This document shows positions 12,386 to 36,929 of a stretch of DNA of 64,000 nucleotides, in pieces. Made by a program: the position numbers and the translations under genes. Numbering within the stretch: position 1 is the stretch's first letter; each line of letters starts with the position of its first letter. The notes beneath the pieces are model-generated. The model ran no database searches. It saw only the letters and a list, made by a program, of their open reading frames with translations, and had not been told where the DNA came from. Origin of the DNA: Selaginella moellendorffii (Eukaryota > Plantae > Lycopodiophyta); contig NW_003314306.1 in NCBI RefSeq assembly GCF_000143415.4, forward strand, positions 294,029 through 358,028, given 5' to 3'.

Positions 12386-13859
12386 CGGTGCAAATAGTAA
12401 TCTAATCTTGGTGGCTACACTAACCCTAACCCTGACGGCTGCCCTAACCCTAACCAATATCTCATCTTGGCTGTTCATTCCAAATAACCTAAATCTCAAC
12501 CATCACAATATCTTCAATTTTATTTTATCTTATCATTATTATTATATGTGAATTATGGTTCTTTATTGTGTATATTTTAATGATGATATAACTAGCATCT
12601 ATCAATAATTCTGTTATTAGAGATATGATATATTTTTTCTAAATTATCTAAAAAGGATGCATTCTCATCAATATTTTATATATATTTTAGAACCGTTACA
12701 AGAACTTTAAAGAGTATAAATAAGGCACATTAAAATATGTTGCACTATATTTATCTATAAATGGATGGATCCTCATCCTGAAATTTATTTTGTGTTGTAT
12801 TAGATCCTAAAAAATAGGCATGTGCTTTAAATGTTATTGAGCAATGTTCACAATTATGGATAAAACTTGAGTTGTACTACGAATCAAATCTATCATTGAA
12901 GAATAAGATTTGACAAGAATTATCATCATCTACCATTTAAGATTTGACAACTTGACACATCACATATGCTGACAATTAGATTGGATCTCTTGAATTGACA
13001 AACTATAGCAGAATGTCATTACTAATATCATTATTGACTATCAAACTTCACATGCTGAAAATCCTTCCTTGGATCTATGTGTATACATGCATCAGATATC
13101 ATAATAGATGACAGTAATATTAATACTATCACACTTGCACATGTTAAATTTGCTATAAAATTTAAATTCATTTTGTATATTGACATTCTTCTTATTGCTC
13201 TATTTAAATTTCAATTACTTTTCACTATGGATTTTTATAAGTAGTATAAAGAAAGAGAACTCCAAAACCTATTGAGAAGGATAGAGAGGTTTCTTTTTCA
13301 TTTTCAAAATCACCCACCTCTTTCATTCTCTTAGAGTATTGTTTCCGAAAGTTTTTTATATCGGCGTTTTGATCTTCGTCTTGGCTCTATTGCTTTAGAG
13401 GCTGTGATTTGTAACAACACTGGTATAGTTGTATGTTTAGAGGTTTGTCTTTCAGGTGTGGGCAAAGGTGGACAGCAATAAGATTTGCAGAATTCTAAAT
13501 CGAAAGAGATTTGAGTTTTTGGATATTCAATCAAAGTGTCAAGATGCACTCTAACTAAAGTGAATATGAAGCAAGAGTCAATTATTATTTTTTCATCCTC
13601 TTTTAATTCAAGTGAAGAAGTTATGCTAGTGTCGACGCCGAATTCACTAGCTCCAGCTCTAGCTCTAGCTTTAGCAATATTCAAAGCTGTTAGCAATGCT
13701 TTCCAGTTTTTGTGCCTCTCAATCGACATGCACTTGTTTTTGTATAGGCTTGTGAGCGAACTTCCATCCTCCTACAATAACAACATTTTCTTAGAGCTAC
13801 CACCTCTTGTTAGTAACACAGCTTTCAAACGGAAGGGGATGGAAACCAAGCAGGATGTC

Positions 13860-16045: not shown

Positions 16046-16215
16046 CGCCCCTTCGTCTTCAAAATATTTACCATAAACCCTGCCTTTGGTGTAGATTTTG
16101 TCTCTCGAATGAACATGTTAGGGTCTAGTGATTTTGCAAATGCATGGGTACATTTTGACCATATAGGGCACATATCGGGTTAGACAACCATAGGAGCTCA
16201 TGTATATAATCCAAG
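16046..16215 (+). pseudogene. MULE-like transposase remnant (piece 2, first catalytic Asp)
   Basis: PFVFKIFT...AWVHFDHIGHISG*TTIGAHVYNP, followed by a GT donor at 16216. Confidence 0.7.
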
Positions 16216-16257
16216 GTAATTTTTATTCTCATTATATTGAAATTATTGTAATATTAC

Positions 16258-16279
16258 GCTCTATTTCGTTAAAGTGGGA
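16258..16279 (+). repeat. Left terminal inverted repeat
   Basis: Exact reverse complement of 36889-36910. Confidence 0.92.
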
Positions 16280-16707
16280 ATTGTCATTATCCCACTTGTA
16301 AAATAAGGTTTCCAAACCTTTATATAGTATATAAATATAACAAAATTCAACTGCATTGAGGCACATGCCATTTTATTTTAAACAAGGAAATGTCTACTCA
16401 ATCACTTCTCCTCCCCCTGCCACTGCTTCACCTCTCTCTTCTCCTTGTCATCATCGTCCAATTTCTTTCCATCCTTTTAATATTGGCTCAGTTGCTCCGA
16501 GTCTAGGTGGAGCCCAAGTCCCCATTCAATCTTTACTTTCCCCTTATTAATAAAACAACTTCGTAGACTTCCAATAACATGCTGTAACACGTTGTAACAC
16601 TTCTAGTATAATGCAAATCCTCTCAAAGAATTGTCTTTTAATATTAATACAATGGCATGGAACCCCATGCCATAATAAGTTACATTTTTAAATAAATACA
16701 TGCCATC

Positions 16708-17529
16708 TCAGACTGTTATTTTTTGCCTCCAACGCCTATACAATAATCTTAGAATTTCATCACTCTCCACACTATCAGGATTTAAACCCAATAGTAATGC
16801 CATCTCTTCTCTAATACGTCCACGCTCATGTTCAGTGGTTGAAGAACCCATCCGGTTGAGCAGATTATGGAGATGCGGATAGTGTTTGGCTAGACAATAT
16901 ATATGCCATAAATGATGACTGGTGTCTGTCCGATCAAATGGCTTCTGATATACCGTTCCATCTGCCATTTGGTTGATTTCTGCAGCCACCTCCTGGACTG
17001 GCCGGTTCTCTATCACCATCGCTCCAAGCCGTTTTGCAAGGTCCCCCAGAACATAGGATTTCTTCTCCCTAGTTTCCATACTGCAAGAGATGGGGTGCAC
17101 TGCATATGTGTGCGTGTTCGCTGCAGTTTTAATCGGCGAGTCATCGATGATGAGGATTTCACTTGACCTAGCAGTCCGGTTCATCACTACAGCCTCTGGC
17201 TTGACGAAGATGGGCTTGCTACCCCTCACATGGACCATAGTCAAGCAATCCTCCTGCGTTAGGAGAAAGTCAAATGGTAATATTACTCGCGTCTGATCGT
17301 GCATCATCTGTAGCAATGTTAATGCATTGTGGCGCATCATGGATGTCCAAACTCCCAATTGCAAATTGAACCCGGCCCTCTGTTTTAAGTGTCGCATGGT
17401 TTTCTCCCATGAGCGTGGCTCGTCCTCGAATGTCACTGCACCCTCCAAAGCCTGCGGTCGCAAGTTGGTCAAAAGAGACAGATTCACATTAATCACACGG
17501 GAGAAACTGCGGGATCTAATAATGACCAT
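16708..17529 (-). CDS. FCP1/NIF-like HAD-fold phosphatase domain, probably the 3' end of the cargo gene
   Basis: LGVWTSM...FLLTQEDC...IFVKP...ILIIDDSPIKTAAN matches FCP1/SCP-family motifs II-IV. No clear DxDxT motif I. Confidence 0.7.
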   Translation of the reverse strand: MVIIRSRSFSRVINVNLSLLTNLRPQALEGAVTFEDEPRSWEKTMRHLKQRAGFNLQLGVWTSMMRHNALTLLQMMHDQTRVILPFDFLLTQEDCLTMVHVRGSKPIFVKPEAVVMNRTARSSEILIIDDSPIKTAANTHTYAVHPISCSMETREKKSYVLGDLAKRLGAMVIENRPVQEVAAEINQMADGTVYQKPFDRTDTSHHLWHIYCLAKHYPHLHNLLNRMGSSTTEHERGRIREEMALLLGLNPDSVESDEILRLLYRRWRQKITV

Positions 17530-19397
17530 CTACAATATTAGCGAATGGTGCTCCCGATGGTCGTTCAGAGGGTTTTGGTCGAGGAAACGTGAAGGGCGGA
17601 AATACTCTCCTCTGCAATGTGGGGTCAATCGCATCTGATGGCGTGTGGGCACATGCCATTTCAGCTGTAGACTCTGGTACAACTGGCTCAATAGTGGCAT
17701 GGGGTGGTTCCGATGGCGTGTGATCACACGCCATTTTAGCTGGTGCCTCCGTTGGCAAAGTGGACATGACCGAACAGGCAGCAGGTGTGGTGTAGGGAGG
17801 TTCCAACGGCGCGTAGTAAGACGATTGGGCACACGTTGAGTCCGTTGGAAATGAGGATACAACTGGCTCGGCGGCTGGGGCGGCCTCATGCGGGTCCAAT
17901 GGCGCTTGGTCACCGTCAGTTGGATACGTGGACAAGATTGACTCAGTGGTATGGGCAGCATCAAGTGGAGCGTGGTCAGCTTGCTTGGCGTTGATATGGA
18001 TAGTAGCCTCCACCAGCTCTGATGACTCTTGCAGGCAAGTAGAGTCCACTGGCGGATCCATATGCATGTCCAAATATCTCCCTTCGATTGAGATGGTATC
18101 CTCCCTACTGGCTACTAAAAACAAACTCATTAGCACATTGAATCGACTATACTGTATTTACCATCAACTGCTATTGAGGAACTAGGACCGATATCACTTG
18201 GGCGCACTGCTGATTCTGAAGGATTGGACATATGTTTCGACCCTTGCTTGGCACTATCCTTCCTCGACACTAAAGGCTAGAATTTGTATCTTAATTCAAC
18301 TGAATAATCTCTACTTACCATTTGCTTTGCAACCTACATGGACAATGTTAGAAATGGTAAAAGGTTAGGAATGGATGTACTATTATTTACCTGATGGTTT
18401 GTCTTGTATGACCTTCCTCCGCTGCTCTTTGGCCACCTCAGGCTGGCCATCATCGTCATCATCGTCGTCGTCGTTATTGTGATCGTCACCATTGTGAGGA
18501 CCATCCAAGTCCTCTTCGTCCTCCTCTTCTTCGTCCTCCTCTTCTTCGTCCTCCTCTTCTTTGTCCTCTTCGTCCTTCTGCTCTTCCTGCTCATTATCTT
18601 TCTCTGGCTCCTCATCCCCCTCCTGCATTTCTTCCATAGGCTGCTCAGGCTGGATGGCTTATTCTTCCAGGACCATCTTGGGAAAATCATCTGGCCGAGT
18701 CTCCATCTCAAAATACAAGACATCCATAGCCTATTTTAGTGCATGACCTAGGACCGTATCCTCACCCGACTGTCTTAACATGGTTTCTGCACGTTCTTGC
18801 ACCCTTCGAAGACGACGAGATGAGAAAGACGTGGCCCTGACTTGAAAAGCATCCCTCATCCATTGTACCTCTCCATTGAGATGAGAAAGACGTGGCCCTG
18901 ACTTGAAAAGCATCCCTCATCCATTGTACCTCTCCATTGAGATTGGGGAAGGGGACTCCGCCATAGGAATCTGAGTCTGGAGGTGGTGACCGCGAGGCAT
19001 TACTTATCATCTTTTCGTTGCCCTTCTTCCTTTTCGAATCAAACGCCTCTGATCCCGATGACTGTCCAACGTGCTTTCGCTTTTTATGACCACTGTCAGT
19101 TTGAGCTTGGCTGGTGCTTGCCTGTTTTGCCTTTGAAGAAGTGTCTCCTGCAAGGAATGGCATGAGACCACACGCCATTGCAAATATAATTTGTACCTCC
19201 TTTTTTCCTATTGCTTGTCTGTTTGTCCTTCTTCGACGCGCCACCAGTGCGCTTTTCAGTCCTCATGTCTGAATATTCACAACGATCTATAATCAAAATG
19301 GCGTGAGGCCTCACGTGACCTTACCTTGTGCAGGTTGTGAGCTCGGCCCAACAGTAGCTGTTAACGCCGTTTCAGCATCTGGCGGTGGCCACGCTCC
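17516..19397 (-). pseudogene. Spliced basic/acidic low-complexity linker exons of the cargo gene
   Basis: Short GT-AG introns (about 19397-19446, 19269-19324, 19148-19196, 18334-18390 and two more near 18.1-18.3 kb) join the exons in frame. Contains a poly-Glu/Asp tract, a 61-bp tandem duplication (about 18817-18938) and in-frame TAG/TAA stops. Confidence 0.65.
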
Positions 19398-19429
19398 TGC
19401 ATACAGAGCTTGTGAGATAACATTTAAAC

Positions 19430-21627
19430 TTAAAGTGCGTACTCACCAGGTTCGCAGAGAAGATACTGTTTTTCTTTGGCAACTGTAATTATATGCTTCA
19501 TTGAAGTCACCTCTTCAATGGAGTTTGTCACCGCAACACACGGGACACCCTTGAGTAGTGCGGCTCGAAAGAATAGTCCGCCGCAGTTGTACTCGACAAC
19601 GCATTTGCCCTTGGAGTCAGAAGCAGGTGCTATTGCGTTGAAGACCCAGCTGAGCATTTCCCATGCTGCACCTGGAGCTTTCTCTGGATTCGAAAGCTCC
19701 ATAGCCATCTTCAGTTCCTCAGGCACGGGTAAATTGACCTCCCTCAGATCAATTCGATCGGCCTTGTCGAACGAAGCTGGGAAGTCACTCCAGTCCCACT
19801 CTGCTGCAGGACCAATAACAAGGGCGAGTGTGAAGATGCGGACATTCGTCGGTATCTTCTTCTTAGCCATTATCCCATGGATCTCCTGCATCTCCTTGCC
19901 TTTCAACCGAGCCTTCACCTCGTTCAAGGCCTTCCAGAACTTGTGATAGGATTCGGAGTCGTAGATCATATAGTGGACTGAAGATTCCACCTCCGCAAGT
20001 CCCACCATTAAGTCAATGATGGAGCTGACTTCGTCTGCATGAGTGATCTCCTCGTTTGTGAAGTCCATCACACAAAAGATGTTCTTGACCTGCTCATCTC
20101 CGCGGGAAACGATGCTCCTCCACCTTTGATCCTCATCCGAATTTACGTATACCCGGTAAGGTTCTTGATAGGCCTCTGCTGCGGGGTCGAGCTGTTTCTG
20201 AAGCCGGCGGTCGACATCCCTTTTAATGAAATTTGGATACTGATCCAACTTCTCAGCTTTACTTTTCGTGGCATCCCGCAGCAGATCGATGAACTTGGGG
20301 GCCCCCTTCATGTAGTCGTCGATGTCTTCATTTGACAACTCCAGCTCTTCCATCATCTCTTGCGTGGTGTCGATGCTCACCCTCTCCACGGCCACTTGCT
20401 CGAAGATCCAATCCTTCAATAGCGCACGAGCTCTCAGAGTCGTGCACAAGTCCTCGTATGTCACAATATGGCCGGGAGTCATTTTGGTCTTGTTGAAGAC
20501 TACCTCACCACGTAGAAGAGCATTAGCCACTGTCAGAAGGTCGTCGTCGTCTAGAGACCGCGAGAAACGCAAGGCGTTGAGCTTCAAATCATTGGGCTTC
20601 CGGCCGTCCTCCAGACCCATTGAGTTTAGCAACTCCCCGTCATGGTACCTCCTCAGCACATCTACCCATTTGTCAAAAACAACTTTTGTCGCGAGTAGAA
20701 TGTTATGGATGCTGAGTGTGTCATTGACCCCCAGTGTTTTCGAGAGAAGACTCGAGAATTCCTGCAATGGAAATGGCGTGAGGCCACATGCTATGCCACA
20801 TGCAACGAGGCTTACCTGCCAGGCGCTAGTTGCTAGTGCACGTCCTTGTCCTGGTTTTTGTGGCTTCTTCAGTTGAACCCAGAGCTTCCGTGTTCGTGCC
20901 AATGTCTCATGCAGACCTGATTTGTAGCACGTTTCTTGCTTGACATTCTGCGCGTGGGAGATGGATATGATAGATCGGAGGGGTGAGTTGCCTTTTATCA
21001 GGCGGACAACTCTTGTCTTGAAGACTTTCTTCACCTCCTCGCCCACCATAATATCCACAACTATCTCTTGTATCGCCAAACTAGAATGCTGCCCGGAGAT
21101 GGCATAGAACCGGATGTTCTGATCGTCCAACACCTTCCTATTGATCAAGTCTGGAAACCTCGTCTCGCCCTTCATTGTTCGGTAGTAGGGGATCACGTCT
21201 GCGATGTCGGGTGTTACTGGACTTGCCAGCATCTTCTGCTTCAGTTTCTCCACCCACTCATCAGATACTAGCCTGTGGTTGTATTTGCTTTGGATCTCGA
21301 TACGACTCACGTCGATTGTATATACTTTGTTGGAATAGTAACAAGTACTATTATCTGCGACAATTTTTGCTGCCTCTTCTTGCTCTTTCTACTCTTTGCG
21401 GCTCTTCTTTTTGGTGGGTGTAGTGTTCGAACCCGAGGCAATGGCATCACCGAGTAGCTTCTTTTTTGGAGCAAGAGAGTCGGACGTCGGCTTGAGCTTG
21501 ACCACCCTTTTCTGCTTCGGGGTAGTTTCCAGATCGACCCCTTTCCCCTTCGCTTCGCGAACTGGAGGCACTCTCAACGGCTCAATGTTGGAATATAGTT
21601 TTTGAACATCGCCGTAGGTGAGGTCCG
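19430..21627 (-). CDS. ParB/Srx-like domain fused to a divergent beta-class DNA methyltransferase fold (cargo gene core)
   Basis: VYTIDVSRIEIQSKYNHRLVSDEWVEKLKQKM...FYAISGQHSSLAIQE (ParB/Srx/DndB-type GxH motif). C-terminal NIFCVMDFT...EKAP...LSWVFNAIAP...GKCVVEYNCGGLFFRAALLKGVPCVAV. In-frame 54-nt intron at about 20762-20815; one stop at 21389. Confidence 0.72.
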
Positions 21628-22775
21628 TGTAAGGAACCAACTCGCCGAGGTGTCGTAGGCTAAGGGAACCCCGAAAGCATGACCAAAATGACAAAGAGTT
21701 CATCGGATGGGACTAAGTCAAAGATCGAGTCCAAGACCGACTCTAGGACCGAGTTCGAGATAGAGTCCGGAATCGAGTCCAAGACCGACTCGGGGACCGA
21801 GTTCGAGTCCGAGTTCAAGACCGAGTTCGAGACGGAGTCCGAGATCCGAAATCGGGTCCGAGACCGAGTCCGAAGTCGAGTCCGAGGTCGGGCCCGAGAT
21901 CGGGTCCGAGATCGAGTCCGCGATCGAGTCCGAGACCGAATCCGAAGTCGGATCCGAAATCGGATCCGAGATCGAGCCAGAGACTAAGTCCAAATACTAA
22001 TACGGGTCAAGGGGTGAAAGCCCAAAGCGTGCGTCCCCCAGGGGGGGGGGGCTGCAGGGGGTTCCAAAAGTATAGTAGGGATAGTGAGGTCCAGGAACCA
22101 GTTTTGAAGGGACTCTCCAGTTGGGCTTCCAAACCGACTTGAGGTTGGGACTGGGACTAAGGGGCCTTGGGTGGGAGTGAGCATGGACTTGGCTGGTGCC
22201 GGAGGGGCCATCCAAGGAAGTGCTCAAGAGCAGCTCCCACTCCCGAAAGGGAAACCGATTGCGGTGCTCCCGGCTCATGTGGAGTGGTGCCCCACTTGAG
22301 TACCATGCAGCTCATTGGTCCTCGCCCTTCCTAGGGGCTTGGGCCTTCCTTCGGGATGGAAGTGGGGGGCGAGAGGTACCCATACCGGGCCGTTAGGCCA
22401 CGGTGTTTCGCCCCGGCGTCCCGAAGCAAGTGTTGCACTCAAGACTTGGGATTTAGAGGGTCCCATGATCAAGTCTTGTGGTACCAAGGGATGTTAGGAA
22501 CCTGGAAGCTTGGTGTGCTTGGCTGCTTGTGCTTGCGGGGAGTGTAGCCGAACCTTAAGTCCAGTCTAACCCGGGGAGGGGGATTGGGAGTGATTTGGGA
22601 ATCCGTGGAAGGATGGCTAACACTCCGTTGCTCGTGCAGTGAGTAGCTGAAACCAAGTAGGAGCTGGTACCATAGGCGAGAACCTTGGCAAGGGAACTTA
22701 GCAAAAGCCAAGGCAGTGTTGGACGGATAGACGAGGTAAGCTGGCAAATTGGAAAGGAAAAATTTGTGGCTTACA
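21628..22775 (+). repeat. Chromovirus 5' LTR with internal GAGTCC/GAGATC hexamer array
   Basis: Direct repeat of 28021-29168. Confidence 0.97.
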
Positions 22776-22778
22776 ATT

Positions 22779-22790
22779 TGGTATCGGAGC
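22779..22790 (+). promoter_or_regulatory. PBS for initiator tRNA-Met
   Basis: TGGTATCGGAGC, one mismatch to TGGTATCAGAGC, 3 nt after the 5' LTR. Confidence 0.85.
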
Positions 22791-22834
22791 CTTTTCCTCA
22801 GTTCTAGCGAAGGATAGAGGCGGATTGCTGGGAG

Positions 22835-25800
22835 ATGGCAAGGGCAGGGCGTAAGCGAACCCAGGCGGAGACGGAACCTCCGCCAGAGCTGGAGCCTCCG
22901 GTCGAACAAGAGGCTATGGATGAGGAATCCTTGCATGAGGAGGACTCCAGTGAGGAAACTTCCAAACAGGAGTTCGGTGGCGAGGTTCGGTCGTCCAAAG
23001 CTCGATTGGACGTGCTAGAAGGACAGTTGGCACAGACCAATGCCCTGCTGGAGACTCTCGTACGCAAGCTAAAGCGTGACGAGAGGCGGAAGAAAAAGAA
23101 AAAGACTGCGGATGCTGGCAGCGCAGAAGGTGCGGATCTTTCGGCCAGGACTGAGGCAAAACCAGACAAGGTCGAACAAACCGAAGTGGAATCAGTCCCT
23201 CAGGCAGTTCCCAAGTACAAACCAAAGCCCCCACCGGTCTTCAAGGGAGTGAATGACTATAAGGTGGTGGAGGATTGGTTTTACGATATGGAGGACTACT
23301 TCCGAGCGTTGCGGTTACCAAGCTCGGAGAAGGTCCCATGTGCAAAACCATACTTGGCAGATAATGCCAAGTCTTGGTGGAGAACAACGGAGGCCAACGA
23401 AGGACCGGTGGTCACTTGGGACATGATGAAGGCGAGGATCCGCGCAACATATGTTCCTCCGAATGCCACTCTGCATCTGAGGGATGAACTGAGTAGGCTG
23501 AAACAGACAGGAACCATCCAGGAATATGTGAATGGGTTCATGGTAAAGAGGATACTTGTCACGGACATGGGGGATATGGATGCGTTCCATGCCTTCATAT
23601 CAGGTTTGCAAACCTGGGCTCGCGGCGAGGTGATGAGGTGGAACCCGACCAACTACAAGGAAGCGTTGGATGCGGCCATCAAGGTGCATTTCAACGATAA
23701 CCTGCGAAAGGGGAACACGACGGGGTCGGGATCCACATTTAGCAAAGGGGCCAAACCAAGGGGAACGTATAGCAAGGGGAAATTCAAAAGGAGTTTCTCT
23801 AAGAATGAGTCCTCGGGGTTCCGGAAAGGCAAATCCGGTGGCCAGCGAGCGAGTACGTGGGGGAGTCAAGCGAAAAAGGACAAACCCACGGATAAGAAGG
23901 TCAAGTCGTATAGCAGCGTGGGAAACAACGTATGCTACAATTGCGGCGAAGCGGGACACTTCTCGAGGGAATGTCCCTACCCGAAGAAGGCCAGAGCCAA
24001 TATGGCCATCAAGTCGGGTGAAGTCCAAACTGAGGTATGTGATCCAGTCCCTAACTCAAAGTTACTCATTACCCGAGCAACTTTGGTAGAGAGTCGTTCG
24101 CGACATCTACTAGCCCTCCGAGGGAAGCTCGGAGGTAGCTTTGTTAAGATCCTTATTGACACGGGTGCTTCGGATAATTTTGTGGCTGCAGACATAGTCC
24201 GGCAAGCCGGACTAACGGTGCAGCGGCTAGGCGAACCAAGGACTATAGAGTTTGTTCAGGGTAGCCAAAGCACCGATGAGGTACTTCGACAAGCGAGAGT
24301 CGAAGTGGGGACATGGAAAGTGGACATGGATTTCACCGTCTTGGATATGGCGGGATTTGACGTGATCTTCGGAATGGATTGGTTTAATCGGTTCGTGGTA
24401 GCCCTGCATGGACAAGGTAGGAACCTTGTGGTATTGGCGAATGCCCAAGGAAGAAGATCTAGGGTGGAGGCCCAGGATCTAAAGGTAGGGCAAAGCAAGG
24501 CCAAAGAGTCATGCTTGAACCTGGTGTCCACGAGAGGACAACTCACTAAAGGAACTAAGACAGCCTTTTTGTGCTTACTCTCGGTGAAGAGTGACAAAAA
24601 GACAAGAACGGAAGAAGTGCCTTTAGTGATCCAGCGAGTGTTGGACCAATTCCAGGATACCATGCCGGAGGAGCTACCGGCGGGGTTGCCCCCCGCACGA
24701 CCGATAGAACATAAGATTGAGCTTGTCGAGGGCGCTGAGGTGGTGGTTCGTCCCCCCTATCGTTTGAACGAAAAAGAACTCAAGGAGCTCAAGTGCCAAC
24801 TAGAGGAGTTGGTGGGCAAAGGGTATGTTAGGTTGAGCAAGTCGCCGTATGGGGCGCCGGTATTATTTGTGAAAAAGAAAGATGGATCTATGCGCATGTG
24901 CATAGATTACCGGTTGCTCAACAAGTATACCAAGAAGAACAAGTACCCGTTGCCAAGGATTGAGGACCTGTTCGATAGGTTGGGAAAGGCAAAATACTTC
25001 TCGAGGATTGACCTAAGGTCAGGATACTACCAGATCAGGGTAGCCGAGGAAGATGTCGAGAAGACAACCTGTCGAACGAGGTATGGGAGCTTTGAGTTTT
25101 TGGTGATGCCCTTTGGGCTGTGCAATGCGCCGGCAACGTTTTCGGCGTTGATGAACCACATCTTTGTACCCTATCTGGATCACTTTGTGGTCGTCTATAT
25201 TGACGACATCCTGATCTATAGCGAGACGCTAGAGGAGCATGCCGAACACTTGGCGAAGGTGTTTGAGAAACTAAGGGAATATAAACTGTATGCTAAAGAG
25301 AGCAAATGTGACTTTGCTCAGCAAGAGGTAAAGTTTCTCGGGCATGTGGTGGGCCAGGACGGGCTCAAGGTGGACCCGGAGAAGGTCTAAGCGATCCAGG
25401 AATGGGAGCGACCATCGAATGTACATGAGTTGAGGGCGTTCTTGGGGCTATGCAACTACTATCGAAAGTTTATCAGACACTATTCGAGAGTAGCCCTGCC
25501 CTTAACGGATCAAACGGGAAAAGGGAAGATGGTATGGACAGCGGAATGCGAGGCGGCATTCGTCCACCTCAAAGGGAAGTTGAGGAAGGCTCCGGTGTTG
25601 GCATTACCAGACTTTGGTAAGGACTTTGAGGTAGACTGTAAGCAACCAAAGGGAACGACTCGGGAGACGATCCATAGGGGTTCAAATATAGAGGGAAAGG
25701 GCCCATGAACAAGAGTGCACCCCCTTTTCCAATCGGTAAGTGGCCTGCCCACGAGAAGGAATTGTTTGCGGTGGTCAAAGCGCTCAAGGAGTGGCGACAC

Positions 25801-27615
25801 TACCTTGGGAGACACTTCAAGGTTTACACGGACAATATGGCAACGAAACACTTCTTGTCACAACCCGACCTGAGAGGGAAACAAGGTCGGTGGGCCAATG
25901 CCTTGGCCGAGTTTGATTGCGAGATTCTGTACAAGCCTGGGAAGAGCAACATCGTGGCAGATGCGCTAAGTCGAAAAGCGAGCTTGAGGTTGGCGATCTC
26001 CAGCGCAACAGCAACCTTCTGGGACGATGTGCGGACAGCATATGAGAATGATGGTCTAGCACAAGAAGTGTTGTTGAGGAATCTGGAGGCACGGGAAGCT
26101 CACCAGAGAGGTGAGCCGCCAACGGAAGAGAAAACGGGCTATGCGGAACGCAATGGACTCATTTATTACAAGCAAACGAGGGTGTATGTTCCAGAAGGTG
26201 GACTAAGGAAGGTAGCCTTAGAAGAGTGTCATGACGGACCTCTTGCGGGACACGGCGGAGTGCCCAAGACGATGGGCTTACTCAAGAGGAAGTACCATTG
26301 GCCAGATATGGCTAAGGACGTCCAAGACTATGTAAAGACATGTCCAACATGTCAGCAGGTCAAAGCCGTGACTAAGGCTAGTGGGGGCTTGTTGCAAAGC
26401 ATCCCAATTCCAGATCGTCCGTGGAAATGTCTCACGATGGACTTCATCACGGGACTACCCCCAAGCGAGGGGTTCGATGCGATATTCGTGGTGGTGGACC
26501 GATTTTCGAAGATGGCACATTTCATACCCACCACAACGGAGGTGGATGCGGAAGGTGTGGCGAAACTGTTCTTCGAACAAGTGGTTCGAGTGCGGGGAAG
26601 GCCAGAGGAGATTATCTCAGATCGAGATAAGATCTTCACTAGTAGGTTCTGGAGGACCCTCCTGGAACAGTATTGCACCAAGTTGAAATTCAGCACAGCC
26701 TATCACCCACAGACAGGTATGGGGTATTAAGTCAAGTTTGGTGGTCCTAACACTTCTTGACAGACGGACAAACGGAAAGGGTGAATAGGCAGCTAGAGGA
26801 TTATTTGCGATGCTATGTCTCGGGAGACCAGACCGATTGGGTAAGTCATTTGGGACTTGCGGAAATGTGTTATAACAACTCACCACATTCGAGTATCGGG
26901 GTGAGTCCATGGGAAGTCATCAATGGGCGAGCTATTGAAGGTCCTGTGGAACTCGGCGTGGCCGAGTATCATGGAGAGTTACCCGCAGTGGAGGCATTCA
27001 CGGCGGAAAGACTCAACATTTGGAATCTAGTGAGGGATTCCTTGGAACGGGCTCAACAAAGGCAAACCAAGTACGCGAACCTAAAGCGCCGGGACGTAGA
27101 GTTCCAAGCTGGGGAGAAGGTGTGGCTGAACACCAAGAACCTTAGGCTACCAAGTGGGATCAGCCGAAAGTTGACCCAAAGGTAAAAATGCATGTATTCC
27201 TGTAAATGAATTGATCTTGAGTTCCTTAAGCAGGTTCGCGGGGCCTTACGAGATTGAGGCACGAATCGGTAAAGTGGCTTACCGACTCCGACTTCCTCGA
27301 GAGATGGGGAAGATGCACCCAGTGTTCCATGTGAACTTACTCAAGCCGTACTTTGAGGATCCGCTTCGCAAAGACCAAGTAAGACCTTTACCTGAGGTTA
27401 TCCAAGGGGAAGAGGAATACGAAGTCGAGGCCATCCTCAATGCGCGCAAGAGCAAGCGACAAGGACGCGAGGTGAGAGAGTTCCATGTGAAGTGGAAAGG
27501 ATTTCCACACTGCGAAGCAACATGGGAACCGGAGGAGAACCTAGCGAACGCGCGAGATCTAGTGGAGGAATTTCTGCAAGGCAGAACTCTATGTACTTAT
27601 GCAAAGTTCAATTAA
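22835..27615 (+). CDS. Chromovirus gag-pol (disabled copy) with two introns in integrase
   Basis: [14 protein letters not shown] knuckle; ILIDTGAS protease; [13 protein letters not shown]; stop at 25388; RNase H N-terminus replaced; HDGPLAGH...[20 protein letters not shown] integrase motifs; introns 26717-26763 and 27182-27233; chromodomain YEVEAIL...[21 protein letters not shown]. Confidence 0.93.
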
Positions 27616-28020
27616 AAATATCAATTTGCAAAGTTGAGCAAGTGGCATATGTTGGGACCCGAAGGCGCGCCAAAGGTGAGCTAATTAGCATGGGTTAGCT
27701 AGGTCGACCAGGCGTAGGGAGCTACGCCCAACTCCCTGCGGGGATGTCGAAACCGTAGATGTATTCTACGGAGGTTGGGTTCGAGTCCCAACCCCCTAGT
27801 AAAGCAAGGCTGGGTTCAAGTCCCGACCCCATACTAGGGCGTGGTGAGGGGAGGAGTATAGGGACACCTATATTCCGTTGTCATGAGCTCTTGGCCGGGG
27901 AGGCTAACTTAGGCACACCGCTAAGTGGGGGGATGCCCCCGGAGACATGGTCAACAAGTCGTAGGATAAAAAAAGAGACGTTCGATGTGGGCATCGAACT
28001 TCTTCTATGGGTGGTGGAGT

Positions 28021-29168
28021 TGTAAGGAACCAACTCGCCGAGGTGTCGTAGGCTAAGGGAACCCCGAAAGCATGACCAAAATGACAAAGAGTTCATCGGA
28101 TGGGACCAAGTCAAAGATCGAGTCCAAGACCGACTCTAGGACCGAGTTCGAGATAGAGTCCGGAATCGAGTCCAAGACCGACTCGGGGACCGAGTTCGAG
28201 TCCGAGTTCGAGACCGAGTTCGAGACGGAGTCCGAGATCCGAAATCGGGTCCGAGACCGAGTCCGAAGTCGAGTCCGAGGTCGGGCCCGAGATCGGGTCC
28301 GAGATCGAGTCCGCGATCGAGTCCGAGACCGAATCCGAAGTCGGATCCGAAATCGGATCCGAGATCGAGCCAGAGACTAAGTCCAAATACTAATACGGGT
28401 CAAGGGGTGAAAGCCCAAAGCGTGCGTCCCCCAGGGGGGGGGGGCTGCAGGGGGTTCCAAAAGTATAGTAGGGATAGTGAGGTCCAGGAACCAGTTTTGA
28501 AGGGACTCTCCAGTTGGGCTTCCAAACCGACTTGAGGTTGGGACTGGGACTAAGGGGCCTTGGGTGGGAGTGAGCATGGACTTGGCTGGTGCCGGAGGGG
28601 CCATCCAAGGAAGTGCTCAAGAGCAGCTCCCACTCCCGAAAGGGAAACCGATTGCGGTGCTCCCGGCTCATGTGGAGTGGTGCCCCACTTGAGTACCATG
28701 CGGCTCATTGGTCCTCGCCCTTCCTAGGGGCTTGGGCCTTCCTTCGGGATGGAAGTGGGGGGCGAGAGGTACCCATACCGGGCCGTTAGGCCACGGTGTT
28801 TCGCCCCGGCGTCCCGAAGCAAGTGTTGCACTCAAGACTTGGGATTTAGAGGGTCCCATGATCAAGTCTTGTGGTACCAAGGGATGTTAGGAACCTGGAA
28901 GCTTGGTGTGCTTGGCTGCTTGTGCTTGCGGGGAGTGTAGCCGAACCTTAAGTCCAGTCTAACCCGGGGAGGGGGATTGGGAGTGATTTGGGAATCCGTG
29001 GAAGGATGGCTAACACTCCGTTGCTCGTGCAGTGAGTAGCTGAAACCAAGTAGGAGCTGGTACCATAGGCGAGAACCTTGGCAAGGGAACTTAGCAAAAG
29101 CCAAGGCAGTGTTGGACGGATAGACGAGGTAAGCTAGCAAATTGGAAAGGAAAAATTTGTGGCTTACA
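28021..29168 (+). repeat. Chromovirus 3' LTR
   Basis: Direct repeat of 21628-22775, preceded by the PPT-like GGGTGGTGGAGT. Confidence 0.97.
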
Positions 29169-29173
29169 GTCCG

Positions 29174-29650
29174 TGGATTCCATGTGATCTTCATAGACCC
29201 ACAGCGTCTTTGAAATTGTGGGCCTCCTGGACAACCTCCCCTAGCTCCCTCTAGGAATTCCTCATAGCCGCTGCCCCCCTCCGGGAAGCCGCTAGGATGT
29301 GCAAGGTGGATCTTGAAGGCGGACGTTGTCTCTACCACAAGTGCCAGTCCATATTCTTGCATGGAACTGCATGGAGTGTCTGTCACTTGGATGAGGATCC
29401 CCATGCATTCTTTTCTCCCACCATCTGTGTTGTACAGCCTCAGATCCTCGCCTTCCATCCCGAAAGTCCAACTGGTGAGCTCCTCCCCCTTCTCTGCATC
29501 CACATTGACAGTGGCTGGAAGAAGAACGCAGTTCCTTGCCTGTTCAGAAATGCACAACAATTAGAGCTGACAGATGAAAAGCTAGTAGCTGGAAATAACG
29601 TGAGGCCACACGCCATTCACCACTGCATCAGATGTCTTGAGGCTGCATCC
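29174..29650 (-). pseudogene. 5' exons of the cargo gene, separated from the rest by the chromovirus insertion
   Basis: Reading YEDHMESTD|LTYGDVQKLY joins across the GTCCG TSD. GT-AG intron at about 29540-29621. Confidence 0.55.
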
Positions 29651-29919
29651 TAAGATGGCGTGAGGCTACACGCCATCTGTAACCGGACTGCACTCGAGAG
29701 CCCAATCGGTGCATGCCAATGTTGCTACTGAATGGCATGTGGCCTCATGCCATTTTCTACTTGGCCTAAAAGACTTACCATTTGAAGCCGAATGGAGGCG
29801 TGACAATCGAGGCCGGACTCGCTGGCGAATGTGCACTGTGTGTGTAGCGGATCGTAGCAGCAAGGCTACTCTGCCACTTAACAGTTGGAGAGTGGCACTG
29901 AAATCTCCCGGGACGCCAA

Positions 29920-30180
29920 GTGGGTTGCGTGTGGGTGGCGGAGTGGGCGGCGGAGTTGGCGGCGAAGTTACAAACTGGGTGTGTCTTGAAGTGGACGCCG
30001 ATGCACACGAGCGCGATGCGAGCGCGAGTGTGATGCAAGCGCGAGTGGACGCCGATGCACACGAGAAACCTGTAGAGAAGGTAGATGAGTGCGAATGTGA
30101 GCGTGATCGCGAGTGGGAGCGCGATGCGAGCGCGAGTGTGCGAGCGTGAGCGCAAGTGTGCCAGCGCAAGTACGAAGCAA
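29920..30180. repeat. GC-rich GCGAGT/GTGGACGCCGATGCACACGA repeats upstream of the cargo gene
   Basis: Visible short tandem and near-tandem repeats. Confidence 0.6.
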
Positions 30181-30489
30181 AATGCAAAACCTAACCTCAC
30201 ACGCGTGAAATGTCACAACGGTTGGTAATCCCGCCACGTCATCATTCCTCGGACTTGGGCGCCACCATTAATTTTTGGATTGCCGCGCGCATGCAAGCAC
30301 ACAAAATCCAAAAGAAATCCGCAACGTCATCATTCCTCGGACTGCATGCACGCGAAATCCAAAAGAAAGATCATGATTGGGATATCATTTAATACCCTCG
30401 CTATATTTATACCATGCATGATTGGATATTCCAAAGCATCTTGTATTTCCAAAAATGGCAGATGTTCAGCTAAATAAAGAAATTTTATC

Positions 30490-31850
30490 TGTTTCTATTT
30501 TTCTCTCAAATCAATATTATAGCGTGTGGGCTCATGCAATTTTGAACCAAAGAAACCCAAAAAACGTTGGACCCAAAATATTTTTAAAAAACCCAAAAAA
30601 CCCTAAACATTTTAAACCCAAAAATCCAGGCGTCCTGTGGCGTTATTCCTTGAATGGCGTGTGGGCGCATGCCATTTTCAGGGCCAAATGCTGAATGGAG
30701 AAAAATTCCCTTTCAGTGCAAATGCTGCAAGAGGCAGATGCTGAGCACAAAAGACTGTAACTACCTCACATGACACAGATAAACTTTTCTCTATTTGGCA
30801 AAGATAAACTTTATAGCGTGTGGGCTCATGCAATTTTGAACCCAAAAAATGCACCAAAAAATTCTCGGCGTCATCTGGCGTTATCTCTTGAATGGCGTGG
30901 GGCCGCATGCCATTTTCAAGGGCACATAGGAGTATATTTCTAGGATATTCTGACACGCGCGAGATTTTTTTGAGTTTTTTGGAGATCCAACCGTTAGATC
31001 GCAACTAGATTTTACAGAAAGGTATACAATGTCTTTCTTGATGACCCTGCAAAGAAGCATCTCGATCAGACACCACATGAGACCACACGAGCCTTACAAT
31101 ATTTCAGGGGCATTTGCCATAGATCCGACCGTTATTTTGCTCCAAGATTTTACAGTTTGGTGTGCATTGACTTTTCCATCGACACTGCAAAGGGACATCA
31201 CAATCAAATGCGGGATCACAAGAAACTAACTTCACTAACTCTGGTTTCACTAAGATCTACGTAAGGAGTTATGAAATGAAAGGACCCTCTCTATTGAAAT
31301 GTGTTTATGGTCCTAGGGGCATTGTGACATATCAAAGGATTTTGCATCAAGTTCTATATTTGCATGTTTATCAAGCTACTGAATTGCTAAACCCTAAACC
31401 CTAAACCCTAAACATGTGGCAAATGCTGCGTGAAGAAAGATGCCCTTTCTGGGCAAATGCTGTAAGAGGCAGATGCCGAGCAGATGTATCTCAGGCTAGC
31501 GAAGGGGACAAACGAAAGCTAGCTATAAACATGACGGGATGCAAATAGATTACTAGGCTGGTCCTGCGAAAATCAAAAACCATAATTGAAAACATTGAAA
31601 ATGCAAAAAGAAAGGTTTATAATATTTTTGAATTTTAAGCAACCAAAGGAATGTAAGTAGGGCATGTGTTTGTAAGTTTAAAAATGCCTCGACCACTTAA
31701 ATTCCCAAGTAAATAAAGCTGTTTCTATTTTTGGTACAGGTAAACTTTATAGCGTGTGGGCTCATGCAATTTTGAACCCAAAAATGCACCAAAAAATGCT
31801 CGACTAGCATTATTCTTTGAATGGCGTGTGGCCTTATATTGCCATAAATG
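30490..31850. repeat. Three related modules of about 130-190 bp (about 30490, 30785, 31720), each with a palindrome pair, in the divergent intergenic region
   Basis: TATAGCGTGTGGGCTCATGCAATTTTGAACC...TTGAATGGCGTG occurs three times. Confidence 0.75.
31387..31413. repeat. (CCCTAAA)3 plant telomeric / telo-box repeat
   Basis: CTAAACCCTAAACCCTAAACCCTAAAC. Confidence 0.85.
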
Positions 31851-32219
31851 GACGTACACACACAGCATAATTATTCCTTTACACGGCGAATAATCTTGGC
31901 GCGGATCGCTGACATGGCATGGCAAAGTTCGAATCACTGACATGGCACAGCTGGATCGAGGCAAGGACATGATGTAACAAAGTTCAACCTCCGACAGCAA
32001 AGTCTAGAAGCTACTCAGTTTGAAATTTGTCAGAGGAGTCATAAGATCTGGTTTGTCAGAGGATTTGATGTGACGTTCAAGCGTGTGTTATTTTTGAATT
32101 CTCGAACTCATTCCTAGGTCTATCATTTTTATGCGCCATGTTCTTGGTTCCGCTGAGCGCAGTGAGCGCTGCTTGTGTAAGTGGCATTGTGAGCTATGGT
32201 TTATGCGTCTACGAGTGGT

Positions 32220-32342
32220 TGCAGCATTGCGAGCGCCATTGCGAGCGGCAGTTTATGCGAGTGGCAATTTGTGCGAGCGGCGCTACGAGCAGTTGCGGTG
32301 TTGCGAGCGGCGCTACGAGCAGTTGCGATGTTGCGAGCGGCA
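32220..32342. repeat. 30-bp tandem repeat (GCGAGCGGCGCTACGAGCAGTTGCG...) upstream of the transposase
   Basis: Directly visible. Confidence 0.7.
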
Positions 32343-32645
32343 CTGTTTTTGGTGTGGCTACCACTTCCTCTTGATATTCGGCACTTGTGCTTCCTGGTAT
32401 GTTCACCATGGAATGGCTTAGGACCACATTTAGAAATGGCATGAGGCCTCATGCCATTAGTGGTACCACTAATGGCATGAGGGCTCATGCCAATTTTGTG
32501 AATGCGAAATTTCACGTGGGTGTCAATAGCATGTTTGAATAATGGCATGTGACCTCATGCTATTGAGGTTGTTTGGTATGTTATGATTTAGGCCATTCTC
32601 CAATCATTTTTTGTATGGTCTTAACTTCTTTTCTGCACTTTCAGA

Positions 32646-35600
32646 ATGGCCTTCAGGGTTAGGGAAAAGGTTTACATTTTGAATGGTGGGAAGAGAGTTG
32701 CAAAAGGGACCCTTGTGTCTATGGATCAGAACTTTGTTATACACTGTCAAAGGCTTAGGGAAGGCAATGCTGCTGTATCAGTAGAGACTGTCTTCGATGG
32801 GAATGTGGTCGCTATTGAACGAGGAGAGATGGTCATCGGGGTAAATGTTGTTGTTGCCTTGAAAAATCTTCAGAAGAAAGCAGATGTTGGGGACAGCGCA
32901 AGTGCAACGCATGTTCCCTCCGTGGATCTTAAGAACTGTGCTACATGGATTCAGGCAAAGGTGTTTCTAAACAACCCCGAGGGGGAGGTGGTAGCTGAGG
33001 GCTTAGCCACAGTTGTCGATCCAAGAGATGCGGTTGCTAATCAAGAATTGGGCTGGGATGATATTGGAGTTGCGATTTTAGAGGTTGTTGACACAGAAGA
33101 AAACAGTCTGACTATTGGAAGCATTGTGCAGTGGAAATTGAGGCACTTAGTGTTTGAGAATGTGAAGGATTCACAATCAAACACCACTACAACTGATGAC
33201 AGAACATCTCTTCATGGGAAAAGAAAGTACACCTTCCTAAAGCGCAGCCAAAGGGATCTGAGCAACGAACCGAAAAGGCAAAAAATGGTGATGGAGGTTC
33301 GAATGGTCTCGACAGTTGCTTGTTGTAAGAGGAGGTGCTGTCAACATGCTGATTGGGATGCTATTGAAGAGGAGAGAGCAAGATACAAGACATTGTCCTG
33401 GAAGGCAGCTCGCAATTTTGTGTATGAGGCATTACGGTCATCTGTTGATGCTTCAGAACATCAGGTGAGGGGCATGGTCTTCTAGAGGGGTTTGGTCTGC
33501 ATGAAGGCATGGAGAATCATTTATGGAGTCCCTCGAACCACATTCTACAGAATCAAAACTGAGTTCGAGGAACAAAGGGTTCAACAGGCAGTCCATGGGA
33601 ACGACGGTACGCACAAAACCAGAGGTCATGTTGTATATGGAGAGGCAATCTTCAAGAGGTTTGTCGAGACATGTAGCGAGCAGCAACCACATAAAACCCG
33701 CCTCTTGGAAGATGGAACACGAGACACCCAACGAGTTCTCCCTTCCATGTATACCAAGGGGGCCATATTGGAAGATGTGAATCAGGAACTCCAGAGTAAT
33801 GGCTACAAGAAGCTGAGCCAATCTAGATTTAGTAGATTGTGGAGCAACAGGTTCAGAGATGTGAGTATAGGAAAGTACTCCAGCTTTTCAAAGTGTGACG
33901 AGTGCACTGCTATCAAAATGGCTTTGTCGAAGAATTCTTGCAGCGCTCAAGAGCAAGAGACGTTGGTTAGAAGGCGGCTCGACCACAACATCGAGCAGAG
34001 AAGCTGCAGGACTGCATATTATCATAACAGGATTCTCTCCATGGAGAGACCTGACTCTTACCTCTGCATCATCCACGACAAAATGGACCAGAAAAAGACG
34101 TGCTTACCTCGACTCAATCCTGCCCCCAAGGCAATCTCTTCATCCATGCAGCTGCCTGTGTCTCTGTTTGGCATAATCGCTCATGGGCATGGTGCCCAGA
34201 ACTATGGGAACTTCTTTGTACCTCTATGGGGTGGCGGGGGTGCAAACATGATGATTGCGTCCCTAGCAAAACACTTAAGGTCTCTGCAAAGTGCACAGAC
34301 TGAGCTGAACGGCCAACCCTTGCATAAGGCCCTTGTTGATTGAACCCCATACAGGGTTCAGCTGGAGGAGGAGCAAAGGCTTGCAGTATCGCGTGAGTCC
34401 CCATGCCATCCCAGTGAATATGTTGGCCGTCAGATTGTAGGGTTATCACGTGAGGCCTCATGCCATTCCGACGAGGCTGGTCGCCCGGTGAATGCACAGC
34501 CTCATCCAAACGAAGCAGAATCTCAAGGAAGTTCTTGCGGCCGATGTGGCCTTCCACCCCATCTTCTGCTCCAAACAGACAATGCTGGCAGTGAGAACAA
34601 AAACATGTACGTCTTCGCGTACTTGGCGATGCTTGTTGCCAAAGGCATATTTGAAATGGTTACACTTGGCTTTCTCATGGTTGGGCACACTCATGAAGAC
34701 GTCGATGCCATGTTCAGTCACCTGGCAGAGTCCCTCCAGCGATCCAATGTCCTCACCCTCCCACAACTCTACGATGAATTCCAAAATTGCATCAAAGGCA
34801 CTGTTGAAGCTGCACTTGTGACAGAGGTTCCAGACTTTAAGGGGTTTGTAAGAGGCTACATCAGGGACGGATCCAAAACGCTGATTGGCCACTCCAAGCC
34901 TCTTCAGTTTCATTTCAGCATGTGTGACGGTGCTCCAGTGATGAGGTACAAGATGAGAGAATGGGACACAGTGTGGCTGCCAGTGGACGGCATTGAACTC
35001 TTCAAGAGAGATCCCATAACTGGGGAACCTATGATTCCTCAGGGTTCCCCACGGCCGATGCACCCGGATGGACTCAAAGACCAGGAAAGTATAGTGGCCG
35101 GGATTAGACAGCATATTGCCTTCTGGAAGAGGGGGTTGGTGTTTGGTGGAGAATCCTATATCCAGAGGTGCAAGCCTTTGCTCGAATACTGGGAGAAGAT
35201 TATATCTGCTATCCAAAATGGGCCGGTTGTATATGAAGAATTGGAAGAGTCCTTTTGGCCAGAACCCAGAGCACCAGATAGTAGCGGAACAATGTCCTCT
35301 GGAAATGCAGTGACAGATAACGATGTTGAGGATCACTATTGTGGGCCGAGGAACAAGAAGCCGGATTCAGCATTCAATCCAGTACAGGTCTGCAAAGGAA
35401 TGGTTGTGCTTGTCAGACCCAGTAATAAAAAACAAATGATATGGGTGGGGCGCTGCATCACTGATGCAGAGGAGGACGCGGAAACTAACTCCTTCAATGT
35501 AACTGTGGAGTGGTTCAAGCCAAGTTCCGGATATATGAAGGATTGCCTAGAAAAGAGATGGGTGCTGAATCCAAGGGATCCCAGCATGAGCATATCGGTG

Positions 35601-35714
35601 GATAATGTTGTGCATGGTTGGATGCGGAAGCAGAGTGCCACCATCACCTTGCTAGACCATGCAAGAGATGCAGCAAGAGCATTCATAACCCGGGTTCAAG
35701 GTGAGATTCATTAA
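32646..35714 (+). pseudogene. Sola1/DUF7869-like DDE transposase, about 1020 codons with two in-frame stops
   Basis: ORFs 32646, 33492 and 34488 share one frame (stops at 33483 TAG and 34341 TGA). Motifs: CCKRRCC, VCMKAWRIIYGVPRTTFYR, FSKCDEC, IIHDKMDQ, LQTDNAGSENKN, FLMVGHTHEDVDAMFS. Probable terminal intron at about 35701-35752. Confidence 0.85.
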
Positions 35715-35994
35715 TATTCCTTTACTAAGTTTCTAATGTATTTTATTTCAAGGTGAACAATCCGAATCTGAATTAGAGGAGGCATGATGGCATGTGGTCT
35801 GAGATGATGTGACATATGCATTTACCAATCACACGTGCATAAATCTAATAATATGGCGTGTGGCCCATATTAATGGCACATAAACCCATATTGTGGGCTT
35901 ACGTGCTTTATGTACCATCATTCCCTTGCAGCGTGTGTGTTGGTTTCCTTTTATAACACAACGAACTCCATATTTTAGGGTGAAGAGCGTTCTC

Positions 35995-36252
35995 ATGGCA
36001 AGCACAAAATCTGTAAGTGAGGCAGAAAAGGAGACGGAGAAGGAGATAGGTGAAGATGTAGAATATATAAGTCTTCCAAACTCCCCGTACTATACTCCAG
36101 GTGATCATTTTTCTGAACAAACGGCAACATTAACAACTATCGAGAACGCCCCAGTAACGTCAGAGACAACAATCCAAAGCAAAACAACTGACCCGGAGAA
36201 GGATGATAGTACCGCTGAGAGTACCAAAAAGGAGGTGTCCACTAGCGCTTAG
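35995..36252 (+). CDS. Small acidic Ser/Thr-rich ORF near the right TIR, function unknown
   Basis: Open frame MASTKSVSEAEKETEKE...; no recognisable family. Confidence 0.3.
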   Translation: MASTKSVSEAEKETEKEIGEDVEYISLPNSPYYTPGDHFSEQTATLTTIENAPVTSETTIQSKTTDPEKDDSTAESTKKEVSTSA

Positions 36253-36888
36253 GCTTATAATGGCGTGTGCCCTCATGCCATTTACTTGATCACCAAATAC
36301 CTTTTTCCCTTTGCACTAGTATATCTTAATACCGGTCTGAGAAATAGAATGGCATGTGCCCTCAGGCCTTTTACTAAATCACCTTTGAAAGAAATGCAAG
36401 CCTCTATGTCGTAAAAAAAAGGTACTAGAGAAATTCCTTAATAATATGAATGTTATTTAGTTTCATGAAAATACACTAAGGGTCAAATGAGTTAAATGAC
36501 TTCTCCAAACTAGCAATGCCTCTTGCTACACCTTCACAATTAGATTCATTAGAAAAAGATAACATTGAATAATATCTAAATGTTCTCACCATTAAGTTAT
36601 ATGTCTGGCTAATAGGAATGACGTTCATCTTGGAAAGCTCACCACACGCTCAATGAACAAACAAATAGTGTGTGCGCGCATGCCATCGCTCTTCTTTAGC
36701 TTCAGATTCGGCTTGTTCACCTTGACAATGAGATTTATTATACAACCAGATGGACTCAGTCTGGACACAAAGTCACCGCGCTAGTCACCATGCCCCAGAT
36801 ATGTCTAGCCCCTGGACAAAAAACATATAATTTCACGTCATTTTCAAATACTTGAAAATTTGTACCTAGTCCCATTTTACTGAATAAA

Positions 36889-36910
36889 TCCCACTTTAAC
36901 GAAATAGAGC
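36889..36910 (-). repeat. Right terminal inverted repeat
   Basis: Exact reverse complement of 16258-16279. Confidence 0.92.
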
Positions 36911-36929
36911 TTTATTTGTGTTTTTACAG

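Follow-up and report, generated by a model that had tools for sequence, protein, structure and literature searches.

A defective Sola1-type transposon of Selaginella moellendorffii with a ParB-like accessory gene and its own palindrome array

Introduction

What kind of mobile element occupies positions 16256-36912 of a 64-kb stretch of Selaginella moellendorffii DNA (contig NW_003314306.1; the whole 64-kb stretch is termed the window here, and positions are counted within it unless another locus is named), and why does it carry, opposite its transposase gene, a second long gene together with an array of palindromes? A preliminary description of this DNA had proposed a large transposon with terminal inverted repeats (TIRs), a Sola1-type transposase, a divergent accessory gene and an element-specific palindrome array, and that outline is supported by the analysis reported here. 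Taken as a whole, the interval is best explained, with moderate confidence, as a defective copy of a DNA transposon that belongs to the Sola1 superfamily, is multi-copy in S. moellendorffii and encodes a ParB-like partner protein, which is presumed to bind the palindromes.

Sola elements have been recorded from plants but are rare there. In the brown alga Ectocarpus the 21.5-kb element Sola1-1_Ec32, which has a 4-bp target site duplication (TSD), carries a 1,104-aa gene for a ParB plus N4C/N6A DNA methylase opposite its transposase (PMC12477816; Genome Biol 2025; 26:320, where Iyer et al. are cited). The preliminary description had taken the combination to be without precedent and had itself named an existing account of the architecture as grounds for giving up that claim; because Sola1-1_Ec32 is published, the combination counts on those grounds as already described, and the present finding adds a land-plant example to a design that was published in 2025. 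New are the occurrence in a land plant, a methylase domain that is apparently dead, and, in two liverworts, relatives that each have a palindrome of their own nearby; no description of this module in land plants was found in the literature search. The published idea of some giant eukaryotic transposons with a prokaryote-style, self-recognising ParB module is extended here from algae to a lycophyte and two liverworts, and exact ends and a TSD become available for a Selaginella Sola1 family whose accessory gene is unannotated.

Element ends, target site and copy number

As had been claimed, the exact 22-bp TIR sequence occurs twice in the 64 kb, in inverted orientation, at 16258-16279 and 36889-36910, where no occurrence is expected by chance (0 expected). 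The outer limits were set using Logan contigs from four S. moellendorffii runs (X1, X4, X9 and X20), which were compared with window positions 16100-21627. At the left TIR the summed contig depth rises about 7-fold in X1 and 4- to 5-fold in X4 and X9, and contigs of X4 and X9 end at 16256. Other contigs match the left flank up to 16255, and their next 30 bases align at 24 of 30 positions to the window from 36917, the only comparable match in the window; these contigs are paralogous empty sites of a repeated host sequence. Because the empty sites join 16255 to 36917, the insertion comprises 16256-36916 with a 4-bp TSD, TATT (left copy 16252-16255, to which the paralogous host contigs run; right copy 36913-36916), and the element proper, once the TSD is corrected in this way, is 16256-36912. 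Its TIRs are accordingly 24 bp long with one mismatch, the 22-bp exact part included (left TIR 16256-16279 on the plus strand, exact from 16258 and placed by contig ends and the rise in depth; right TIR 36889-36912 on the minus strand, placed by its inverted-repeat match). Without a nested long terminal repeat (LTR) retrotransposon, described below, the element measures 13,107 bp, in agreement with the 13.1 kb estimated earlier.

The trinucleotide TTA, which had been proposed as the TSD, is excluded, as the empty sites (16255 to 36917) fit TATT only. A further proposal, that excision of the element rebuilds an intron of a host Mutator-like element (MULE) gene, could not be confirmed: beside the putative splice sites the reading frames stay open for only 10 and 16 codons, and no MULE domain was detected in the open reading frames (ORFs) neighbouring the element. 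Four base pairs is the TSD size made by Sola1. The likeness of the TIR to that of an insect Sola1 miniature inverted-repeat element lacks significance: the score was reached in 112 of 2000 shuffles.

In X1 many contigs link distant points of the accessory gene (region 16979-21543) and lack splice-like ends at the joint (18047 to 21543 and 16979 to 20762, among others), and every position is covered by dozens of variant contigs; because of these internal-deletion joints and variants, a multi-copy family with deletion derivatives fits. Logan contigs also show other copies in the same genome in which the accessory gene is contiguous with the left TIR.

Transposase

The transposase gene (32646-35714, plus strand) has no introns and consists of a single 1,023-codon frame interrupted by two nonsense codons: the ORFs 32646-33485, 33492-34343 and 34488-35714 lie in the same frame and are split only by a TAG at 33483-85 and a TGA at 34341-43. 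The earlier estimate of about 1020 aa on the plus strand is thus borne out, with the qualification that two in-frame stops interrupt the single frame. The protein matches Pfam DUF7869 at E=1.6e-39; its core reads LQTDNAGSENKN...LMVGHTHEDVD, and the DDE/D core motifs are IIHDKMD, DNAGSENKN and GHTHEDVD. Comparison with the published core of Sola1-1_Ec32 (DN..ENKN...MVGHTH..D) gives 26 of 50 identical positions, counted by eye, and the best BLASTP match of the Sola1-1_Ec32 transposase is Repbase Sola1-1_PPa (PMC12477816). On the strength of these sequence matches the assignment to Sola1, already made in the preliminary description from the DUF7869-type motifs, is accepted. A further transposase fragment (P0022) is 98% identical. 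No mention of DUF7869 was found in the literature searched.

Accessory gene and its protein

The minus-strand gene described earlier as long, spliced and divergent from the transposase is present as a series of ORFs, with putative splicing suggested by frames and GT..AG signals only. Its putative start (29174-29183, minus strand; ATG 29183-29181) was placed by the frame and by the lysine-rich N termini of relatives. The main coding exon (19448-21627, minus strand) encodes a lysine-rich start resembling a nuclear localization signal, followed by ParB/Srx-like, helical and methyltransferase-like domains; it contains the motifs ADVIPY (21202-21185), ISGQHS (21100-21083) and the motif I-like VVEYNCGG (19600-19577). 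Once the LTR element is removed, 652 codons run without a stop (21388-19433); a further 101 codons in the same frame lie ahead of them and reach the ATG, and the two stretches are separated by a lone TAG (21391-21389), which is CAG in other copies. Farther downstream on the same strand lie putative exon C (18391-19261), which encodes a basic and then an acidic region and is broken by a 61-bp tandem duplication; putative exon D (17534-18114), a proline-rich repeat ORF with two palindromes and with inferred splice sites; and a last ORF of 273 aa (16711-17529) with a weak NIF/HAD-like region. To judge from their frames, these downstream ORFs could be joined by GT..AG introns, which would give a product of roughly 1,400-1,500 codons.

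Homologues of the accessory protein are few and weak: a search of 1.84 billion representative proteins gave 12 matches at E<=1e-3, which come from Selaginella, Riccia, Calypogeia and metagenome or Logan contigs. Protein searches by word index, run with the 626-aa ORF and with alignment A1 as queries, gave no match, probably because low-complexity words swamped them, and phmmer and profile searches against the PDB returned no ParB, methylase or phosphatase.

An AlphaFold-type model, which had been put forward as a check on the domains, brought ParB/Srx-fold matches for the N-terminal half. The AlphaFold2 (AF2) model built from 12 sequences has a mean predicted local distance difference test score (pLDDT) of 57 and is good for residues 210-400, with values of 45-70 in the ParB-like part and 25-60 in the methyltransferase region; a single-sequence AF2 model (pLDDT 33) was useless. 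In a Foldseek search of the 12-sequence model against the PDB, all of the first 28 matches are ParB, Noc, KorB, PadC or sulfiredoxin (E from 1.2e-3, probability about 1), and VIA-align of the ParB-like part gives Z scores of 6.9 with PadC, 6.1 with KorB and 6.0 with pNOB8 ParB. Among the Atlas rows, nine of ten are ParB_N, often together with HTH_ParB, and the Atlas's own model of one relative, P0011, matches ParB_N and DndB. By structure only, the N-terminal half is thus predicted to comprise a ParB/Srx fold and a helical domain like the DNA-binding module of ParB, Noc and KorB. The best structural matches, KorB and the ParB-parS systems (PDB 8qa8, 7ol9, 6sdk), are dimeric and act on palindromes that occur in several copies on their own replicon; the accessory protein differs from them in having no detectable sequence similarity, a eukaryotic nuclear setting and no ParA partner. 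Since its conserved motif SGQHS replaces the ParB arginine-rich box, CTP binding is not to be assumed.

The following domain is methyltransferase-like. When residues 406-645, where the model is of low confidence, were compared with 48,161 chains, the top seven matches were all beta-class N6A/N4C methylases (M1.HpyAVI, CcrM, M.BceJIV, TTHA0409, rotifer N4CMT, M.MboIIA and M.RsrI; Z 5.0-5.7), and the embedding neighbours that have names are all PF01555, at 0.79-0.81. The Calypogeia relative matches PF01555 at E=0.0016 (18.9 bits, cut-off 26.7) over ...KPRQLYHRLM...ILDFFSGE, the motif I region, and one other relative does so at E=0.084; the window ORF has no PF01555 match, and every family member is below the Pfam cut-off. 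Motif I (FxGxG) is kept but degraded, reading VVEYNCGG here and IVEYGCGG, IIDIFSGG or VIDINTGG in relatives. Motif IV, (D/N/S)PP(Y/F/W/H), is absent from the 652-aa ORF, from P0001, P0003, P0007, P0012 and P0017, and from all frames of two liverwort loci; the equivalent strand reads VMDFTNEE. The domain is read as methyltransferase-derived and probably inactive.

Low-complexity tails follow the methyltransferase-like domain. The NIF match in the last ORF is below threshold (18.7 bits against a cut-off of 21.8, E=1.4e-3, profile positions 53-126 of 160), no DxDxT phosphatase motif (D.D.[TSV]) occurs within 950 nt in any of the frames, whichever way an inverted segment lying there is oriented, and no PDB sequence match was obtained for the NIF/HAD-like region. 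The label of ParB, methylase and phosphatase in the preliminary description therefore survives in part: the ParB/Srx fold stands by structure, a methyltransferase-like fold stands less firmly, and the labels of active enzyme, for want of motif IV, and of phosphatase are too strong.

Palindromes in the element and beside its relatives

The palindrome ATGGCRTGnGGCCnCAYGCCAT has 21 sites at <=3 mismatches, and all 21 are inside the element (0.03 expected), with none in the nested LTR element and none in the other 43 kb. Its half-site AATGGCRTG has 27 occurrences in the window against 1.2 expected, and 24 of these are inside the element. Twelve of the 21 sites lie in the divergent intergenic region (29184-32645), the 3.4 kb between the two start codons, which also holds other short repeats; six are in the accessory gene, two within the transposase frame (34388, 34445) and two near the right end, counting the weakest at 36349 (subterminal region 36260-36370). 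A half-site pair is present at 16360-16378 and 36342-36360, the half-site at the left being about 100 bp from the end. The palindrome arms alternate between CG and CA/TG, with 19 CpG against 22 deaminated-type dinucleotides. At 17638-17734 in-frame palindromes read MACAHTP and MACDHTP in the repeated proline-rich stretch of the accessory gene, and the two in the transposase gene (34388-34466) lie between its catalytic motifs one and two. An 18-bp palindrome, AATGGCATGGATGCCATT, with the arms of the element palindrome and a 2-bp spacer, is located at 15907-15924, some 330 bp beyond the left end of the element.

Relatives of the accessory gene in two liverworts have palindromes of their own. In Riccia sorocarpa the homologous gene is 4 kb upstream of a 934-aa DUF7869 ORF, and the palindrome GTTGATTTTnAAATCAAC has eight distinct sites (14 matches on two strands, 0.38 expected) at or inside the ParB-like gene, with none found at the transposase ORF. 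In Calypogeia fissa a third palindrome, GCCTCGAGAnnnTCTCGAGGC, has 14 sites around the homologous gene (0.00 expected), partly in a 35-bp phase; at the locus L002 the runs at 10499-10624 and 13591-13681 are spaced exactly 35 bp apart. The palindrome therefore differs in each lineage, and it is on these element-specific palindromes, different in Selaginella, Riccia and Calypogeia, that the predicted binding by the accessory protein rests. Three natural pairs of protein and palindrome with different sequences are thus available, and because the pairs differ, the binding hypothesis is directly testable by swaps of sites and proteins.

A different relation is seen in a Selaginella paralogue, P0001/SELMODRAFT_409495 (L003 10001-11425, GL377575.1), a 451-aa protein that has the helical and methyltransferase-like parts and no ParB domain. 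Its gene sits between ArfGap and VQ genes on both haplotype scaffolds, with no palindromes near it, and is a candidate domesticated gene. The assembly that holds P0001, GCA_000143415.2, also encodes a host gene of the window without a single difference, on scaffold GL377610.1.

Proposed role of the accessory protein and alternatives

In the mechanism proposed here, dimers of the accessory protein would recognise the palindromes as ParB does parS or as KorB does its dispersed RK2 operators, and binding would mark the DNA of the element itself. KorB controls promoters from operators that are dispersed; the outcome here would be regulation of the bidirectional promoter and/or the gathering of the element's DNA, either for transposition or as a defence against silencing. 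The accessory protein is unlikely to methylate DNA directly, because the catalytic motif IV is missing, and since the methyltransferase part appears catalytically dead, the simplest model of self-methylation is disfavoured for the land-plant members. In maize, En/Spm TnpA is likewise a second element protein, which binds short repeats at the ends and affects transposition and epigenetic state; its fold and superfamily are unrelated, and its 12-bp repeats are confined to subterminal regions.

Two published algal elements bear on this mechanism. Sola1-1_Ec32 resembles the Selaginella element in being a giant Sola1 with a 4-bp TSD, a DN..ENKN / MVGHTH core and an opposite-strand gene with a ParB-like and then a methyltransferase part, the strand and domain order found here matching the Ectocarpus type; the accessory proteins are likened by published description and domain order. 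It differs in being from a brown alga, in having TIRs that are 282 bp long, imperfect and of other termini (24 bp here), and in a methyltransferase that its authors predict to produce 4mC or 6mA, whereas the domain here is without motif IV; no palindrome array is reported for it, whereas the Selaginella element has 22-bp palindromes throughout, as well as long extra C-terminal regions of the accessory product. In the Plavaka element of the red alga Bostrychia moritziana, PAG3 has an N-terminal ParB-like domain and a 2OG oxygenase, with adjacent inverted-repeat arrays, and self-binding has been proposed (bioRxiv 10.1101/2025.02.11.637652; Curr Biol 2025). PAG3 is thus alike in that a ParB-like domain of a transposon accessory protein is fused to a domain of DNA- or chromatin-modifying type, with repeats beside the gene, and unlike in its superfamily (Plavaka, CACTA-like), in its oxygenase partner and in having tandem arrays by the gene rather than palindromes dispersed over the element.

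Several observations weigh against the overall reading. The TSD of this single insertion, TATT, is one base off the AWWT target preference given for Sola1 in PMC3845634 (citing Bao et al. 2009). No ParB sequence profile is detected for the ORF or for eight aligned relatives in Pfam or the PDB to E=10, one relative giving a weak DUF6551 match (E=0.12), and the ParB call depends on a model whose pLDDT averages 57 and on Z scores that stay below 8, with the methyltransferase region modelled at pLDDT of 25-60 only. The two genes are in tandem in Riccia, not divergent. Some palindromes are subterminal, like transposase or TnpA sites in other superfamilies. Expression and splicing of the accessory gene were not seen: no run recorded as RNA contains the gene, and run X20, guessed to be RNA, yields patchy unspliced pieces.

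The subterminal sites lead to the alternative that survives best, namely that the palindromes are transposase binding sites used in synapsis, as in Ac, Mutator and En/Spm, and that the ParB-like protein has an unrelated role. Sites or half-sites do lie 100-650 bp from both ends (16360-16378, 16652, 36260, 36349), and two sites are within the transposase frame. However, 12 of the 21 sites are in the central intergenic region, close to where the accessory gene begins, the palindromes of Riccia and Calypogeia are grouped around the ParB-like gene, with none found at the Riccia transposase ORF, and Plavaka, with an unrelated transposase, also places inverted-repeat arrays by its ParB-domain gene; this alternative is considered unlikely, if still worth some weight. 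An active N6-adenine or N4-cytosine methyltransferase guided to the element by its ParB domain, as in the algal reading, is improbable: the fold and embedding matches to PF01555 enzymes and the conservation of a motif I-like segment in relatives speak for it, whereas (D/N/S)PP(Y/F/W/H) is absent in the ORF, the five relatives and the liverwort loci, FxGxG is degraded to NCGG, FSGG and NTGG, and the Pfam score is below cut-off in every member. That the minus-strand gene is a captured host gene, passive Pack-type cargo that plays no part in the biology of the element, is very improbable, for although P0001 lives among host genes (ArfGap, VQ) free of nearby palindromes, a liverwort homologue lies a few kb from a DUF7869 ORF and the brown-algal Sola1 has a ParB plus methyltransferase gene (neither compared at full length with the window protein), other Selaginella copies carry the gene contiguous with the left TIR, and the host paralogue is without the ParB part, which suits a gene domesticated out of the element better than one that the element captured.

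With the ParB-like protein taken as the partner of the palindromes, a broader proposal can be put forward tentatively, as a possibility rather than an expectation: ParB-like proteins and their cognate palindromes may form a portable self-recognition module of eukaryotic transposons that co-evolves lineage by lineage, its methyltransferase part having become a pseudo-enzyme in land plants and a ParB-less paralogue having been domesticated in Selaginella. If true, the module would be a eukaryotic counterpart of ParB-parS or of KorB and its operators, acting by binding (promoter control, DNA bridging or a shield against silencing) and not by the writing of marks.

Decay of this copy

Comparison with the majority of other copies in the Logan contigs over window positions 16258-21627 shows how far this copy has decayed. 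Of about 62 single-base differences, 47 are of the C-to-T or G-to-A type in the window copy (21 are A here and G elsewhere, 26 are T here and C elsewhere), a bias that fits the signature expected of a methylated, decaying copy, in which methylated cytosines would have been deaminated. The 61-bp perfect tandem duplication in putative exon C (18817-18938, where 18817-18877 equals 18878-18938) is private to this copy, one unit being absent elsewhere; when one unit is removed and the majority single-base and 15-bp changes are applied, the flanking ORFs fuse into one ORF of 280 aa. Relative to contigs of X4, X9 and X20 a 125-bp segment bounded by ATGG and CCAT (17400-17524) is inverted, so that 17400-17529, the first 43 codons of the last ORF, is in inverted orientation with respect to other copies; both orientations keep a 273-codon ORF, with different N termini. 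Several small insertions and deletions are also present. The accessory gene is broken in this copy by the LTR insertion, one stop, the 61-bp duplication and the 125-bp inversion, and because of the two transposase stops, the LTR insertion, the accessory-gene stop, the frameshifting duplication and the inversion, this copy is dead.

Nested retroelement and surrounding DNA

The nested element (21628-29168, plus strand), which is not part of the transposon, is a young Ty3/gypsy LTR retrotransposon identified by its LTRs, TSD and domains. Its LTRs are 1,148 bp long with TG..CA ends and are identical at 1136 of 1140 compared bases (99.65%); the 5-bp TSD GTCCG is at 21623-27 and 29169-73, and gag, protease, reverse transcriptase, RNase H and integrase domains are encoded. 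It sits 15 nt downstream of the putative ATG of the accessory gene. Outside the transposon, two short minus-strand ORFs (9592-9777 and 10122-10304) contain sequences resembling motif I (VVIDCTIGSGS; PF01555 E=0.13) and motif IV (FDFPN), and have the appearance of another methyltransferase-like gene, now decayed, in the repeat that surrounds the transposon. Farther upstream, a 1,082-aa minus-strand ORF with integrase zinc-binding and core domains (2241-5489) marks another retroelement.

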